DNA of 63,907 nt, filler included, from Basidiobolus meristosporus CBS 931.73 (Eukaryota; Fungi; Basidiobolomycota): NCBI GenBank assembly GCA_002104905.1. It is 3 parts of 3 records of this genome, joined end to end, with 100 filler letters (N's around TTAATTAATTAA, not from the genome) between each part and the next. Parts side by side here need not be neighbours in the genome. Positions count along the whole stretch, not along the records: positions 56,201 to 63,907 come from MCFE01001347.1; 2 more parts are not named here. One strand, written 5' to 3'. Positions 56,201 to 63,907 of the stretch are shown here, in pieces (the first letter of the stretch is position 1; the number at the start of each line of letters is the position of its first letter). The notes beneath the pieces are model-generated. The model saw only the letters and a list, made by a program, of their open reading frames with translations. It ran no database searches and was not told where the DNA came from. The translations under genes were made by a program, and so were the position numbers.

Positions 56201-56618
56201 TTTGTCGGTGTATTTACTTTAGGAGATTGCTTAGCACAGTTACCATTTCGCCACAGCACATATCCAACCTTTGGACTATAGCTCCAGCCCACCCGCCCAA
56301 GCCCTAACCCTAGACGATCATAATAGCTACGATGATTCGCCTTACTGCTCTGATGGCCATATTCACTGTCGTCGTATCCACTCTGATTATTTTTATTCTT
56401 ATCATTCCAATCTTATGAAGACGAGGTTTCCATCGGGCATTGTTGTTACAATTCACACCTGTTCCAATACTCGAATACTTCCCAAAATACTCTCCAGTAT
56501 TACCAAGAAAACATCATTTATGGAAATGTGGCAAACCTTTTTTAGGGATTAGGGTTGTTGAATTTCACTAGTATAAACTTTCCTCTTCCGGAAAGAAAAT
56601 GTCCTGCTTTTGCGAAAG

Positions 56619-56757
56619 AAAAAGCGAGTATACCCCCCATTTATCCCCGGGCATTTGTCTACGTCTAACCTGGTGTTGCGTCTGGTGAATTGAACACTCG
56701 ACCCTGATAAACAGCGGGATTGTTTCTTGGCAAGCTAACCACTCGGCCAAGGAACAA
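56619..56757 (-). ncRNA. tRNA-derived element: A box in a 12-bp hairpin, weak B box, T5 terminator (also 59550-59688, 62481-62619)
   Basis: Minus strand TGGCCGAGTGG, GTGTTCAATTCAC and TTTTT; stem TTGTTCCTTGGC/GCCAAGAAACAA. It cannot form a cloverleaf. Confidence 0.4.
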
Positions 56758-57017
56758 GCTCATCAAATATCGCCTGCAAGCAACTTCTGTATGCGAAGGC
56801 AATAATAGATGGAGTGGAGTGGAGTGGAGTGGATAGCTGGAAATCACTACCCTGAACTCGTGTACAGTAGACGAGGTAGGTAGCTATTGGAAGGGTTCAT
56901 CTTTGGAAAGGTGCTTCTGATTTATCCCAACAAGTTTACAATGCCAGAACAATCACTCAATCACCCTGCATCCGAAAATTATACGATAATAAAAGTTTGC
57001 ATTTAGTGTACAAAAAT

Positions 57018-57089
57018 AGGTCTCGCCGAGAATCGAACTCGGATTACAAGATTCAGAGTCTTGGGTGCTAACCATTACACCACGAAACC
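57018..57089 (-). tRNA. tRNA-Gln (CUG)
   Basis: 72-nt cloverleaf GGTTTCG...CAAGA CT CTG AA TCTTG...GGCGAGACCT, followed by TTTTT. Confidence 0.96.
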
Positions 57090-57267
57090 TTAGTTATTGA
57101 ATGTCGCACCTGTGATAGTCAATATTTCAGGCGTGCCTACTGGGGTGTTGAATAGGATTGGAAGTAGAAAAAGATGTACCATACTCCCTGCTTAACTTGA
57201 CAAAGATAAAGTAAAAGCGCCATACCATACCATACCATACCATGCCATGCCATGCCACGCCGCGCCA

Positions 57268-57326
57268 GCCGTTGCTCGGAATCGAACCGAGGTCCACGCG
57301 ATCCACTGCCGCTATACTACAATGGC
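57268..57326 (-). pseudogene. 59-nt tRNA-His-like mini-tRNA or pseudogene (also 60199-60257, 63130-63188)
   Basis: Acceptor GCCATTG/CAACGGC and T arm CTCGG TTCGATT CCGAG are intact; A and B boxes are good; the middle is 13 nt shorter than a canonical tRNA. Confidence 0.7.
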
Positions 57327-57591
57327 TGGATGCTTAGCAAGCACCGCTCGCTTCCCCCTTTTCCATGCAATCTCTTTACTCAATATGTTGCCCACGATAC
57401 CCGACACTCCTCTAGTAAAGTAAAACATGGCTGGTAGGTGGCATCCAACGCGAACCGTCTAGGGCGGCCGAGCCTATCGCACTATCCTCTGGAATCGATC
57501 TGTGCTAGCTATATACTAATAAGCAAGGGCAAGTATCCCCAACTAATGAATGCATTTCCGTGTAAGCAATCCATGGGCTACCTAGTAACTG

Positions 57592-57664
57592 GCTTTCGTA
57601 GTGTAGTGGTTATCACATGTCCTTCACACGGACAAGGTCCTCGGTTCGATCCCGAGCGGAAGCA
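57592..57664 (+). tRNA. tRNA-Val (CAC)
   Basis: 73-nt cloverleaf, anticodon arm TGTCC TT CAC AC GGACA; T5 at 57671. Confidence 0.96.
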
Positions 57665-58022
57665 CGATCCTTTTTGCTAGATTTGTATCTAGCATAATAG
57701 ATGAGATGAACTAAGTTGTGCGTATCCTATGCAGATTCATATAAATAGCAGTCTGATAGAGCGTTTGTGTATCCACCTATTTTGCTCCATAGATCTCCCC
57801 AGGCTGCATAGTGGCGTATCACCCTTGAAGGGTATTCTGGCAAAGTAAAAGGCACGTATGTATACATCACCGTCAAGTGACCTTGGAAAATACTACTACA
57901 AAGCCCCTTCCCAACTCATAATTTATATTATATAATGGGTTGATCTAGCTCTGCTTTAGAGAAAACTGTGCTGTAAATACATTGGTCGATACTCTGGTGA
58001 AAATTGAGATTGTTGCATATTT

Positions 58023-58094
58023 GCCTGTATAGCACAGTGGTAGTGCGTCAGTCTTGTAAACTGAAGGTCGGTGGTTCAATCCCGCCTGCAGGCA
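58023..58094 (+). tRNA. tRNA-Thr (UGU)
   Basis: 72-nt cloverleaf, TCAGT CT TGT AA ACTGA; T5 downstream. Confidence 0.96.
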
Positions 58095-58350
58095 AAAACT
58101 TTTTACCATTACCTGATTGTATTTGAGGTCCTCTCGAGACCTACTCGTGTATCGGTGATCAATTCTAGCGATCTATATGGTGCGAAAAAGCTCGTCATAT
58201 GGTAGGCCTGATCTGCTCTACCCCACCCCACCCCTACACTTACAATCGAATCTAGTGTCCTGGCGTGTAACATAATGCTTCGTAAATACCAAATGGATTC
58301 GGAGCGAACCATTCTATCACTCTTGCTTCAAGACTTAGTAGGGAAAGTAT

Positions 58351-58432
58351 GTCGGTCTGTCCGAGTGGTTAAGGAGATAGACTTGAAATCTATTGGGCTC
58401 TGCCCGCACAGGTTCAAATCCTGTGGCCGACG
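58351..58432 (+). tRNA. tRNA-Ser (UGA)
   Basis: 82-nt cloverleaf with long variable arm, ATAGA CT TGA AA TCTAT, discriminator G; T6 downstream. Confidence 0.96.
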
Positions 58433-58756
58433 ATATTTTTTACCATTAAATTAATTGGGCGATTTACTTAGCAAGGTCAGCTGAATGATCTGGCAGCATT
58501 GTTCTCTTGTTGGTAATATGGTTGGCGCAATAGGCAGTAACGGCTGCCTACATGGAGGACACCGCATACCAGCCTCGATACAAGCTACCCTCTCCTGAGC
58601 TTGCCCCTAAACCATGAGTGTAGCATTCAAATGACCAAGATGATTCTTTCCAGATGGTATTTTTATGGGTATTTATGAATTCGCTCGCTTGACTCGACCG
58701 GTAAAATGAATGTGAAAAGCATGTAGTAATGCATCGACTGTTATACATATTAATCG

Positions 58757-58829
58757 GGTTCCATTGTGTAGTGGTTATCACATCTGCTTTACACGCAGAA
58801 GGTCGTGGGTTCGATCCCCACTGGAACCA
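58757..58829 (+). tRNA. tRNA-Val (UAC)
   Basis: 73-nt cloverleaf, TCTGC TT TAC AC GCAGA; T4 downstream. Confidence 0.96.
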
Positions 58830-59948
58830 TTTTAACCCATGGGGACACGGGCTTTGCTATTAATCACTGTGTAGATGTACCCTTTTGATATTGGGCGATT
58901 GTGGAGAGACAGATATATATGCTCACTTTCGCTTCACTCCAACCCTGGTTACTCGATAAGCATCTGTTAGTGGGGGAGATGTATACACGTTCTTCCTGAG
59001 TAGAAAAGAGAGGATCAGATCAAGCCTTTTGGGTAGAATAGAGTTAGAGCGGAAAGATTCGGGCCGAGTATGGGTGGGTTCTTCTTTAGGTCGTCCAAAT
59101 ATACTAGAATAGCGTATCAATGAGATTCCTTTTTGTCGGTGTATTTACTTTAGGAGATTGCTTAGCACAGTTACCATTTCGCCACAGCACATATCCAACC
59201 TTTGGACTATAGCTCCAGCCCACCCGCCCAAGCCCTAACCCTAGACGATCATAATAGCTACGATGATTCGCCTTACTGCTCTGATGGCCATATTCACTGT
59301 CGTCGTATCCACTCTGATTATTTTTATTCTTATCATTCCAATCTTATGAAGACGAGGTTTCCATCGGGCATTGTTGTTACAATTCACACCTGTTCCAATA
59401 CTCGAATACTTCCCAAAATACTCTCCAGTATTACCAAGAAAACATCATTTATGGAAATGTGGCAAACCTTTTTTAGGGATTAGGGTTGTTGAATTTCACT
59501 AGTATAAACTTTCCTCTTCCGGAAAGAAAATGTCCTGCTTTTGCGAAAGAAAAAGCGAGTATACCCCCCATTTATCCCCGGGCATTTGTCTACGTCTAAC
59601 CTGGTGTTGCGTCTGGTGAATTGAACACTCGACCCTGATAAACAGCGGGATTGTTTCTTGGCAAGCTAACCACTCGGCCAAGGAACAAGCTCATCAAATA
59701 TCGCCTGCAAGCAACTTCTGTATGCGAAGGCAATAATAGATGGAGTGGAGTGGAGTGGAGTGGATAGCTGGAAATCACTACCCTGAACTCGTGTACAGTA
59801 GACGAGGTAGGTAGCTATTGGAAGGGTTCATCTTTGGAAAGGTGCTTCTGATTTATCCCAACAAGTTTACAATGCCAGAACAATCACTCAATCACCCTGC
59901 ATCCGAAAATTATACGATAATAAAAGTTTGCATTTAGTGTACAAAAAT

Positions 59949-60020
59949 AGGTCTCGCCGAGAATCGAACTCGGATTACAAGATTCAGAGTCTTGGGTGCT
60001 AACCATTACACCACGAAACC
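59949..60020 (-). tRNA. tRNA-Gln (CUG), copy 2
   Basis: Same sequence at +2931. Confidence 0.96.
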
Positions 60021-60522
60021 TTAGTTATTGAATGTCGCACCTGTGATAGTCAATATTTCAGGCGTGCCTACTGGGGTGTTGAATAGGATTGGAAGTAGAA
60101 AAAGATGTACCATACTCCCTGCTTAACTTGACAAAGATAAAGTAAAAGCGCCATACCATACCATACCATACCATGCCATGCCATGCCACGCCGCGCCAGC
60201 CGTTGCTCGGAATCGAACCGAGGTCCACGCGATCCACTGCCGCTATACTACAATGGCTGGATGCTTAGCAAGCACCGCTCGCTTCCCCCTTTTCCATGCA
60301 ATCTCTTTACTCAATATGTTGCCCACGATACCCGACACTCCTCTAGTAAAGTAAAACATGGCTGGTAGGTGGCATCCAACGCGAACCGTCTAGGGCGGCC
60401 GAGCCTATCGCACTATCCTCTGGAATCGATCTGTGCTAGCTATATACTAATAAGCAAGGGCAAGTATCCCCAACTAATGAATGCATTTCCGTGTAAGCAA
60501 TCCATGGGCTACCTAGTAACTG

Positions 60523-60595
60523 GCTTTCGTAGTGTAGTGGTTATCACATGTCCTTCACACGGACAAGGTCCTCGGTTCGATCCCGAGCGGAAGCA
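60523..60595 (+). tRNA. tRNA-Val (CAC), copy 2
   Basis: Same sequence at +2931. Confidence 0.96.
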
Positions 60596-60953
60596 CGATC
60601 CTTTTTGCTAGATTTGTATCTAGCATAATAGATGAGATGAACTAAGTTGTGCGTATCCTATGCAGATTCATATAAATAGCAGTCTGATAGAGCGTTTGTG
60701 TATCCACCTATTTTGCTCCATAGATCTCCCCAGGCTGCATAGTGGCGTATCACCCTTGAAGGGTATTCTGGCAAAGTAAAAGGCACGTATGTATACATCA
60801 CCGTCAAGTGACCTTGGAAAATACTACTACAAAGCCCCTTCCCAACTCATAATTTATATTATATAATGGGTTGATCTAGCTCTGCTTTAGAGAAAACTGT
60901 GCTGTAAATACATTGGTCGATACTCTGGTGAAAATTGAGATTGTTGCATATTT

Positions 60954-61025
60954 GCCTGTATAGCACAGTGGTAGTGCGTCAGTCTTGTAAACTGAAGGTC
61001 GGTGGTTCAATCCCGCCTGCAGGCA
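60954..61025 (+). tRNA. tRNA-Thr (UGU), copy 2
   Basis: Same sequence at +2931. Confidence 0.96.
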
Positions 61026-61281
61026 AAAACTTTTTACCATTACCTGATTGTATTTGAGGTCCTCTCGAGACCTACTCGTGTATCGGTGATCAATTCTAGC
61101 GATCTATATGGTGCGAAAAAGCTCGTCATATGGTAGGCCTGATCTGCTCTACCCCACCCCACCCCTACACTTACAATCGAATCTAGTGTCCTGGCGTGTA
61201 ACATAATGCTTCGTAAATACCAAATGGATTCGGAGCGAACCATTCTATCACTCTTGCTTCAAGACTTAGTAGGGAAAGTAT

Positions 61282-61363
61282 GTCGGTCTGTCCGAGTGGT
61301 TAAGGAGATAGACTTGAAATCTATTGGGCTCTGCCCGCACAGGTTCAAATCCTGTGGCCGACG
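61282..61363 (+). tRNA. tRNA-Ser (UGA), copy 2
   Basis: Same sequence at +2931. Confidence 0.96.
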
Positions 61364-61687
61364 ATATTTTTTACCATTAAATTAATTGGGCGATTTACTT
61401 AGCAAGGTCAGCTGAATGATCTGGCAGCATTGTTCTCTTGTTGGTAATATGGTTGGCGCAATAGGCAGTAACGGCTGCCTACATGGAGGACACCGCATAC
61501 CAGCCTCGATACAAGCTACCCTCTCCTGAGCTTGCCCCTAAACCATGAGTGTAGCATTCAAATGACCAAGATGATTCTTTCCAGATGGTATTTTTATGGG
61601 TATTTATGAATTCGCTCGCTTGACTCGACCGGTAAAATGAATGTGAAAAGCATGTAGTAATGCATCGACTGTTATACATATTAATCG

Positions 61688-61760
61688 GGTTCCATTGTGT
61701 AGTGGTTATCACATCTGCTTTACACGCAGAAGGTCGTGGGTTCGATCCCCACTGGAACCA
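61688..61760 (+). tRNA. tRNA-Val (UAC), copy 2
   Basis: Same sequence at +2931. Confidence 0.96.
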
Positions 61761-62879
61761 TTTTAACCCATGGGGACACGGGCTTTGCTATTAATCACTG
61801 TGTAGATGTACCCTTTTGATATTGGGCGATTGTGGAGAGACAGATATATATGCTCACTTTCGCTTCACTCCAACCCTGGTTACTCGATAAGCATCTGTTA
61901 GTGGGGGAGATGTATACACGTTCTTCCTGAGTAGAAAAGAGAGGATCAGATCAAGCCTTTTGGGTAGAATAGAGTTAGAGCGGAAAGATTCGGGCCGAGT
62001 ATGGGTGGGTTCTTCTTTAGGTCGTCCAAATATACTAGAATAGCGTATCAATGAGATTCCTTTTTGTCGGTGTATTTACTTTAGGAGATTGCTTAGCACA
62101 GTTACCATTTCGCCACAGCACATATCCAACCTTTGGACTATAGCTCCAGCCCACCCGCCCAAGCCCTAACCCTAGACGATCATAATAGCTACGATGATTC
62201 GCCTTACTGCTCTGATGGCCATATTCACTGTCGTCGTATCCACTCTGATTATTTTTATTCTTATCATTCCAATCTTATGAAGACGAGGTTTCCATCGGGC
62301 ATTGTTGTTACAATTCACACCTGTTCCAATACTCGAATACTTCCCAAAATACTCTCCAGTATTACCAAGAAAACATCATTTATGGAAATGTGGCAAACCT
62401 TTTTTAGGGATTAGGGTTGTTGAATTTCACTAGTATAAACTTTCCTCTTCCGGAAAGAAAATGTCCTGCTTTTGCGAAAGAAAAAGCGAGTATACCCCCC
62501 ATTTATCCCCGGGCATTTGTCTACGTCTAACCTGGTGTTGCGTCTGGTGAATTGAACACTCGACCCTGATAAACAGCGGGATTGTTTCTTGGCAAGCTAA
62601 CCACTCGGCCAAGGAACAAGCTCATCAAATATCGCCTGCAAGCAACTTCTGTATGCGAAGGCAATAATAGATGGAGTGGAGTGGAGTGGAGTGGATAGCT
62701 GGAAATCACTACCCTGAACTCGTGTACAGTAGACGAGGTAGGTAGCTATTGGAAGGGTTCATCTTTGGAAAGGTGCTTCTGATTTATCCCAACAAGTTTA
62801 CAATGCCAGAACAATCACTCAATCACCCTGCATCCGAAAATTATACGATAATAAAAGTTTGCATTTAGTGTACAAAAAT

Positions 62880-62951
62880 AGGTCTCGCCGAGAATCGAAC
62901 TCGGATTACAAGATTCAGAGTCTTGGGTGCTAACCATTACACCACGAAACC
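62880..62951 (-). tRNA. tRNA-Gln (CUG), copy 3
   Basis: Same sequence at +5862. Confidence 0.96.
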
Positions 62952-63453
62952 TTAGTTATTGAATGTCGCACCTGTGATAGTCAATATTTCAGGCGTGCCT
63001 ACTGGGGTGTTGAATAGGATTGGAAGTAGAAAAAGATGTACCATACTCCCTGCTTAACTTGACAAAGATAAAGTAAAAGCGCCATACCATACCATACCAT
63101 ACCATGCCATGCCATGCCACGCCGCGCCAGCCGTTGCTCGGAATCGAACCGAGGTCCACGCGATCCACTGCCGCTATACTACAATGGCTGGATGCTTAGC
63201 AAGCACCGCTCGCTTCCCCCTTTTCCATGCAATCTCTTTACTCAATATGTTGCCCACGATACCCGACACTCCTCTAGTAAAGTAAAACATGGCTGGTAGG
63301 TGGCATCCAACGCGAACCGTCTAGGGCGGCCGAGCCTATCGCACTATCCTCTGGAATCGATCTGTGCTAGCTATATACTAATAAGCAAGGGCAAGTATCC
63401 CCAACTAATGAATGCATTTCCGTGTAAGCAATCCATGGGCTACCTAGTAACTG

Positions 63454-63526
63454 GCTTTCGTAGTGTAGTGGTTATCACATGTCCTTCACACGGACAAGGT
63501 CCTCGGTTCGATCCCGAGCGGAAGCA
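63454..63526 (+). tRNA. tRNA-Val (CAC), copy 3
   Basis: Same sequence at +5862. Confidence 0.96.
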
Positions 63527-63884
63527 CGATCCTTTTTGCTAGATTTGTATCTAGCATAATAGATGAGATGAACTAAGTTGTGCGTATCCTATGCAGATTC
63601 ATATAAATAGCAGTCTGATAGAGCGTTTGTGTATCCACCTATTTTGCTCCATAGATCTCCCCAGGCTGCATAGTGGCGTATCACCCTTGAAGGGTATTCT
63701 GGCAAAGTAAAAGGCACGTATGTATACATCACCGTCAAGTGACCTTGGAAAATACTACTACAAAGCCCCTTCCCAACTCATAATTTATATTATATAATGG
63801 GTTGATCTAGCTCTGCTTTAGAGAAAACTGTGCTGTAAATACATTGGTCGATACTCTGGTGAAAATTGAGATTGTTGCATATTT

Positions 63885-63907
63885 GCCTGTATAGCACAGT
63901 GGTAGTG
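63885..63907 (+). tRNA. tRNA-Thr (UGU), copy 3, cut by the window end
   Basis: First 23 nt match copies 1 and 2. Confidence 0.85.

Follow-up and report, generated by a model that had tools for sequence, protein, structure and literature searches.

Tandem multi-tRNA arrays have so far been found in Entamoeba, some vertebrates and plants, and the tRNA genes of fungi are regarded as dispersed. The tDNA repeat of Xenopus laevis has a 3.18-kb unit with several different tRNA genes, and forms a developmentally regulated array of about a hundred or more copies; among other RNA genes, rDNA and 5S rDNA arrays are the paradigm of concerted evolution. In Xenopus, oocyte-type tRNA genes are tandemly arrayed (PMC11500080), and tandem tDNA clusters are present in zebrafish and stickleback, a survey of 74 eukaryotes having shown that large tDNA clusters are not confined to one clade (PMC2888827). 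The arrays of Entamoeba consist of head-to-tail units with up to 5-6 different tRNA genes (Clark et al. 2006; Tawari et al. 2008, PMC2652664; bioRxiv 10.64898/2026.07.06.736064). Their 25-28 kinds of unit, the largest of 2364 bp, hold almost all tRNA genes, lie at chromosome ends and make up more than 10% of the genome, and the near-identity of units within an array is ascribed to concerted evolution (PMC2652664). The Ser/Tyr/Tyr (SYY) tDNA cluster of Arabidopsis thaliana shows that a tandem multi-tRNA array may be heterochromatic and for the most part silent, and not a dosage device (PMC12308677).

Here, we describe a 2931-bp cassette of five intact tRNA genes that is repeated head to tail in sequence assigned to Basidiobolus meristosporus CBS 931.73 (assembly GCA_002104905.1). 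The window analyzed is a stretch of 63,907 nucleotides, filler included, in which positions 56201 to 63907 come from record MCFE01001347.1; all coordinates are those of the window. On balance, we lean towards a genuine nuclear tandem tDNA array whose repetitiveness kept the assembler from anchoring it. If a long fungal array is true, it would extend such arrays to fungi, and would offer a tractable system for studying the homogenisation and silencing of Pol III gene arrays, and for asking whether dense TFIIIC sites organise chromosomes; with a unit depth of about 1x, it would be an assembly curiosity of no consequence.

The piece (7707 nt, 44% GC) consists entirely of 2.63 copies of the unit (7707/2931), beginning at unit phase 0 and stopping at phase 1845 within the third tRNA-Thr gene. 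With a shift of one period, 4776 positions can be compared, and not one of them is a mismatch; no rival period exceeded 40% identity. The sequence-only reading had reported a cassette with tRNA genes on both strands, repeated head to tail at least 2.6 times with no differences between copies, and this description held. It had also placed the start of the array at a scaffold gap, which is uninformative: the run of Ns before 56201 is an artificial linker. A search of one unit for internal repeats revealed tRNA-to-tRNA similarity only (78% between Val-CAC and Val-TAC), with no sign of recent sub-duplications building it and no transposon terminal repeats. The RIP indices of the piece are not RIP-like, which is compatible with a fungal origin and with a non-fungal one. 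Intact tRNA genes in a head-to-tail repeated unit, a defining feature of tandem tDNA arrays of the Entamoeba, Xenopus and Arabidopsis type, are present in the piece; arrays of this type typically have tens to hundreds of copies at a chromosomal locus.

Both contig ends fall inside the repeat and neither has unique flank, a pattern that an array longer than the reads would be expected to leave. We infer that the 7.7-kb contig stands isolated because the array outlasts what the assembler could bridge, so that the true copy number is probably greater than three. An assembly process that inflated or invented the array, the cassette being single-copy or a simple duplication, or reads having been tiled round the repeat so that the 2.63 copies are a consensus, would also account for a short isolated contig made of repeat alone and for absolute identity, microsatellite lengths included; moreover, the cassette was not met with elsewhere in any of the collections searched. 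However, unique flanks would be expected on a contig from a single-copy locus, and building this contig requires a head-to-tail junction in some reads. De Bruijn assemblers collapse such repeats and do not expand them, and the presence of more than two copies suggests unit-spanning reads or mate pairs. We consider an assembly origin unlikely. The PacBio artefact caused by a missed SMRTbell adapter was rejected, as the repeat copies are direct, not inverted. Full identity, even in microsatellites, cannot distinguish between concerted evolution, recent amplification and assembler consensus; since zero differences even in a mutable pentanucleotide microsatellite are the pattern of an assembler or polishing consensus, the term 'homogenised' used in the sequence-only reading is not demonstrated.

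Over the whole piece, ARAGORN identified 12 tRNA genes, five per unit and none with an intron (Table 1). The set comprises Gln-CTG on the minus strand and Val-CAC, Thr-TGT, Ser-TGA and Val-TAC on the plus strand; Rfam model RF00005 scored them at 57.7-70.4 bits (gathering score 29), which bears out the earlier claim of five different intronless tRNA genes on both strands. The cloverleaf is the minimum-energy fold in four of them (Gln, Thr, Ser and Val-TAC), and a run of T4-T6 lies 1-7 nt beyond the 3' end of each. Strict B boxes occur at five sites per unit (four genes and the pseudogene described below, against 0.04 expected), and lax B-box-like motifs at seven (all five genes and both relics, against 0.52 expected), tRNA-Gln having a lax match only. 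By these sequence hallmarks, namely A and B boxes and T-run terminators, the tRNA genes of the unit appear to be of Pol III type; with its own internal promoter and its own terminator, each would be transcribed independently. An organellar origin was rejected, both the terminators (T runs) and the features of the genes being of the nuclear Pol III type, and a scan for bacterial promoters and terminators detected no enrichment.

Table 1. Features of the repeated piece, in window coordinates
Feature	Position	Strand	Basis or remark
Unit copies	56201-59131, 59132-62062, partial 62063-63907		0 mismatches at period 2931
Telomere-repeat-like CCCTAACCCTA	56302-56312		Sequence
Telomere-repeat-like TTTAGGGATTAGGG	56541-56554		Opposite orientation to motif at 56302
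Doubtful second tRNA relic	56683-56756, again at +2931, +5862	-	Motif matches only
Microsatellite (TGGAG)4.8	56810-56833		
tRNA-Gln(CTG), copy 1	57017-57090	-	ARAGORN; Rfam 63.2 bits; cloverleaf; T5 57012-57016 just past 3' end
tRNA-Gln(CTG), further identical copies	59948-60021, 62879-62952		
Microsatellite (CCATA)4.8 grading into (CCATG)3.6	57220-57257		TRF: 7.6 copies in each of three units
Truncated tRNA pseudogene	57267-57326, again at +2931, +5862	-	Rfam tRNA 26.8 bits, E 4.6e-4; B-box match
tRNA-Val(CAC), copy 1	57592-57665	+	ARAGORN; Rfam 62.4 bits; T5 57671-57675
tRNA-Val(CAC), further identical copies	60523-60596, 63454-63527		
tRNA-Thr(TGT), copy 1	58022-58095	+	ARAGORN; Rfam 70.4 bits; cloverleaf; T5 58100-58104
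tRNA-Thr(TGT), copies 2 and 3	60953-61026; from 63884		Third cut off by piece end
Microsatellite (ACCCC)3	58220-58234		
tRNA-Ser(TGA), long variable arm, copy 1	58350-58433	+	ARAGORN; Rfam 57.7 bits; cloverleaf; T6 58436-58441
tRNA-Ser(TGA), copy 2	61281-61364		
tRNA-Val(TAC), copy 1	58757-58829	+	ARAGORN; Rfam 68.3 bits; cloverleaf; T4 58830-58833
tRNA-Val(TAC), copy 2	61688-61760		

Two tRNA relics per unit had been proposed. The first stood: the truncated pseudogene, whose score falls just below the gathering score, has its acceptor, D and T arms and an intact B box (GGTTCGATTCC), the anticodon loop being deleted. The second is weak, as it combines a Ser/Leu-like D-arm motif (GGCCGAGTGGTTAG) with a lax B-box-like motif and has no Rfam tRNA match at E<=10. 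The microsatellites reported earlier are present, though small, and amount to three short pentanucleotide tracts, each of identical length in every copy, including the (CCATA)/(CCATG) tract in all three units; this tract adjoins the pseudogene on its 3' side (minus strand).

No protein-coding content was detected in the piece, in which the longest ORF is of 93 aa. A Pfam search with 10 ORFs of the unit gave nothing significant (one match at E 0.09, below cut-off), and none of the 10 is present in a collection of 15 billion proteins by exact look-up, where references for ORFs starting with GTG or TTG may be translated without the initial M. A word-based search of 5.8 billion proteins with the 93-aa ORF and with an 80-aa ORF overlapping tRNA-Val found no shared words. 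At E<=1, Rfam matched only tRNAs over the whole piece, with no rRNA or 5S gene; faint C/D-snoRNA-like, tmRNA and plastid-ycf2 matches were far under their gathering scores and were rejected as chance or tRNA look-alikes. A pattern running from the 3' end of tRNA-Thr across 241-271 nt to the 5' end of tRNA-Ser had no match in metagenome_contigs or genome_contigs, and a 22-nt spacer sequence had none in metagenome_contigs or viral_contigs.

These searches bear on two further explanations. The contig might derive from a 2.93-kb extrachromosomal circle or multimer, that is, eccDNA from a tDNA locus, possibly rolling-circle-amplified during library preparation and read round repeatedly. Circular DNA would be expected to give a perfect period without flanks, and eccDNA is known to arise from tandem repeats. 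We nevertheless regard a circle as very improbable: the unit lacks genes for replication or maintenance, its ORFs yielded no homologue, we know of no precedent for a free 2.9-kb plasmid bearing tRNA genes only, and such eccDNA usually comes from an array in a chromosome, so that the array would have to exist as well. Separately from the question of structure, a real array could belong to a co-sequenced contaminant eukaryote (protist, plant or animal), given that the contig is short, unplaced and devoid of protein genes, that nothing in the piece links it to fungi, and that lineages other than fungi are known to have tandem tDNA arrays (PMC2652664, PMC12308677, PMC2888827). Against this, no match was found in metagenome, prokaryote or viral collections, and orphan contigs of this sort most often stem from high-copy host repeats. 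Entamoeba genomes are AT-rich, and are excluded by a GC content of 44%. Contamination is decidedly unlikely.

According to the preferred reading, that of a genuine nuclear array, the contig would sample a head-to-tail tandem repeat of a 2.93-kb eukaryotic tDNA cassette, in which five apparently functional Pol III genes, Gln(CUG), Val(CAC), Thr(UGU), Ser(UGA) and Val(UAC), would be accompanied by one decayed tRNA gene and non-coding spacers. An earlier mixed tRNA cluster would most likely have given rise to the array, through unequal crossing-over or through replication slippage. As for its uniformity, the same recombination may homogenise the array, or the array may be very young.

The best reading is that the array is analogous to, and not homologous with, those of Entamoeba, Xenopus and Arabidopsis. 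Its unit size, its several isoacceptors per unit and its mixed strands match the tandem tDNA arrays of Entamoeba (PMC2652664), with which it also shares a head-to-tail multi-tRNA unit, intergenic simple repeats, near-identical units and the absence of protein genes. In contrast, Entamoeba units are smaller, AT-rich and of 25-28 kinds, whereas a single unit type of 2931 bp and 44% GC is seen here, with no evidence of homology. The hallmark of Entamoeba, namely complex polymorphic STRs separating neighbouring tRNA genes, is absent: of the four gaps from one intact gene to the next, three are free of tracts (Val-CAC/Thr, Ser/Val-TAC, and Val-TAC/next-unit Gln across 58830-59131), and the three small microsatellites do not lie between every gene pair. 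The label 'Entamoeba-like' is fair as a functional analogy to Entamoeba and Xenopus arrays, and fails for the STRs. With Xenopus laevis, the locus has in common a tandem unit of about 3 kb and several different tRNA genes, on mixed strands, that would be independent Pol III units, but the isoacceptor set of the Xenopus unit is different. The Arabidopsis SYY cluster is likewise a tandemly repeated multi-tRNA unit; it is smaller, its isoacceptors belong to two families, its place in the chromosome is known and its copies have diverged, whereas five genes, four amino-acid families and zero divergence are found here. The rDNA and 5S rDNA arrays resemble the locus as head-to-tail units of a few kb with Pol I or Pol III RNA genes, but they carry rRNA or 5S genes, lacking in the 2931-bp unit; they are homogenised and evolve in concert, as the present array may do. 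Our literature search, which covered open-access text, found no tandem multi-tRNA array in fungi, in agreement with the sequence-only reading, which was aware of none described there.

Concerning function, the five anticodons all have U34 or C34, and such isoacceptors are the lower-copy ones in many eukaryotes; a large array made only of them fits poorly with a dosage role. We consider neutral amplification, with many copies possibly silent, more likely than tRNA demand as the driver. In a bolder version, the nuclear genome of a fungus would hold a long, concertedly evolving array of tens to hundreds of copies, the first in the kingdom, of which the contig would be the collapsed tip. The main role of that array would be structural or in chromatin (as a boundary, or as a subtelomeric or centromere-adjacent block), and not tRNA dosage; we hold this version to be quite improbable.

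Each 2.9 kb contains about seven TFIIIC-type B-box sites and paired TTAGGG-like motifs, which are cited by the structural-element reading. As to the latter, a match of the TTTAGGGATTAGGG type was attained in 0.35% of 2000 first-order Markov simulations.

The genomic sequence considered is the 7707-nt piece at positions 56201-63907 only, which contains no N; what precedes position 56201, runs of N and the TTAATTAATTAA linker, is artificial, and the earlier remark that the array starts at a scaffold gap is therefore uninformative. Offset against its own sequence by 2931 nt, the piece gave 0 mismatches among all 4776 comparable positions, and identity never exceeded 40% at the other shifts tried (2900-2959). 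The piece thus holds a 2931-bp unit 2.63 times over, head to tail, as the sequence-only reading had it; copies differ by no more than about 0.06% (95% upper bound, 3/4776). The piece starts at an arbitrary phase of the unit and ends 24 nt inside the third tRNA-Thr gene. Within one unit, we found no internal duplication except tRNA-to-tRNA similarity, and no terminal repeats.

ARAGORN identified 12 tRNA genes on the piece, corresponding to five per unit. These score 57.7-70.4 bits with the Rfam tRNA model (gathering score, 29), and the minimum-energy fold is a cloverleaf for four of the five; anticodons were checked in the folds. None of the five has an intron, in line with the earlier description of five different intronless genes on both strands. 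A run of four to six Ts, predicted to be an RNA polymerase III terminator, lies on the gene's own strand 1-7 nt past each of the five 3' ends. The strict B-box pattern GGTTCRANNCC occurs five times per unit (0.04 expected) and the lax pattern GTTCRANNC seven times (0.52 expected), once in each gene and once in each of two proposed relics. Together, T runs and B boxes characterise nuclear tRNA genes that would each be transcribed independently. Val(CAC) and Val(TAC) are 78% identical across the gene and 13 nt of upstream flank.

Features of the repeat unit, with positions in the first copy
Feature	Position	Strand	Remarks
tRNA-Gln(CTG)	57017-57090	-	ARAGORN; T run 57012-57016
tRNA-Val(CAC)	57592-57665	+	ARAGORN; T run 57671-57675
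tRNA-Thr(TGT)	58022-58095	+	ARAGORN; T run 58100-58104
tRNA-Ser(TGA)	58350-58433	+	ARAGORN; T run 58436-58441
tRNA-Val(TAC)	58757-58829	+	ARAGORN; T run 58830-58833
Truncated tRNA	57267-57326	-	26.8 bits, E 4.6e-4
Doubtful tRNA relic	56683-56756	-	Ser/Leu-like D-arm motif and lax B box only
CCCTAACCCTA, telomere-repeat-like motif	56302-56312		repeats at +2931, +5862
TTTAGGGATTAGGG, telomere-repeat-like motif	56541-56554		repeats at +2931, +5862; matched by just 0.35% of simulations
Microsatellites			(TGGAG)4.8; (CCATA)4.8 joined to (CCATG)3.6; (ACCCC)3

That the piece reflects assembly inflation or consensus rather than biology would account for an orphan contig and for the absolute identity between copies, but it still needs a real end-to-start junction, and we regard it as unlikely. 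Since a contig of direct head-to-tail copies requires end-to-start reads, the least that must physically exist is a duplicated unit or a circle. An extrachromosomal circle or rolling-circle product is very improbable: the unit has no maintenance genes, and such eccDNA normally derives from a chromosomal array anyway. A single-copy locus would assemble with unique flanks, while flanks missing at both ends would be expected if an array outran the reads or inserts. With only direct copies and no unique flank, a real tandem array of more than three copies is therefore favoured, with moderate confidence. A missed SMRTbell adapter was ruled out, as it would yield inverted copies and these are direct.

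The absolute identity of the copies argues only weakly for homogenisation: the microsatellites, the most mutable sites, are equally invariant. The microsatellites noted earlier are indeed present, though modest in size, and each has the same length in every copy; the pentanucleotide tract at 57220-57257, 60151-60188 and 63082-63119 does not vary from copy to copy, either in length or in its interruptions. Such invariance suggests that the copies were amplified very recently, or that they show a consensus made in assembly or polishing. Same-length tracts in all copies would be unusual for a real old array.

Of the two tRNA relics proposed, one is a genuine truncated tRNA; it aligns over the acceptor, D and T arms and has lost the anticodon loop. 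The other gave no tRNA match even at E<=10 (131-nt query), and with motif support only it is doubtful. Directly 3' of the truncated tRNA on the minus strand lie (TATGG/CATGG)n (57220-57257) and then a T4 run; this layout (57213-57326, minus strand) resembles that of SINEs derived from tRNAs and ending in simple repeats, or alternatively repeat expansion within a Pol III trailer. Faint C/D-box snoRNA-like matches at 56706-56775(-) and 56797-56858(+) (sR32, E 0.085; ceN40, E 0.18; SNORD75, E 0.29) reach 14-19 bits, where the gathering scores are 35-50, and are probably due to chance; among them, a UGAUGA box adjoins the doubtful relic. Plants do have tRNA-snoRNA dicistrons.

The unit has no coding content: its longest ORF is 93 aa, ten ORFs had no significant Pfam match, and two shared zero words with 5.8 billion proteins. 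Its GC content is 44.2% and its CpG observed/expected ratio 0.78. TpA/ApT (0.91) is just above the usual RIP cut-off and (CpA+TpG)/(ApC+GpT) (1.17) well above; the two indices disagree, and together indicate a sequence that is not RIP-mutated. A contaminant eukaryote as the source, a question independent of the structural one, seems rather unlikely. Conservation of the tRNAs is too high for their sequences to show which organism this is; 44% GC excludes Entamoeba itself.

Entamoeba arrays likewise carry several tRNA genes per unit, head to tail in near-identical units, with some simple repeats. They differ in base composition, in having a largest unit of 2364 bp, and in comprising 25-28 array types that make up more than 10% of the genome; they lie at one chromosome end. 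In E. histolytica and E. dispar, moreover, complex STRs separate all genes. The earlier observation of a tandem multi-tRNA anatomy is borne out, and its interpretation is supported in part. Closest in size and layout is the 3.18-kb multi-tRNA unit of Xenopus. Oocyte-type tandem tRNA arrays are mentioned for Xenopus (PMC11500080), and in a survey of 74 eukaryotes large tDNA clusters were not confined to one clade (PMC2888827). Tandem tDNA arrays are therefore already known as a kind, of which this is probably a new member. We found no fungal tandem multi-tRNA array in literature available in full text, which excludes most subscription journals, and this absence of precedent is only suggestive. 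In outside collections, four scans with two short tRNA-end motifs and a 22-nt spacer gave zero matches. Concerted evolution would show in a comparison with related species, and no related locus was found in the collections scanned with these short motifs.

Each anticodon in the cassette has U or C as its first base, and no A34/G34 isoacceptor is present among the five genes. In many eukaryotes, U34/C34 species are the lower-copy isoacceptors beside A34/G34 species. A large array of U34/C34 tRNAs only thus fits poorly with an explanation by tRNA demand. Tawari et al. argued that many array copies in Entamoeba must be inactive (PMC2652664), and the Arabidopsis SYY cluster is heterochromatic and, in the majority of tissues, silent (PMC12308677); an array of this kind resembles both situations. 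A structural role is conceivable, as speculation, since every 2.9 kb holds about seven TFIIIC-type sites as well as two opposed telomere-repeat-like motifs. The two motifs, in opposite orientation and about 230 nt apart, bracket the 93-aa ORF, which has no homologues, and could be relics of an interstitial telomere tract or candidate sites for a TTAGGG-binding Myb factor.
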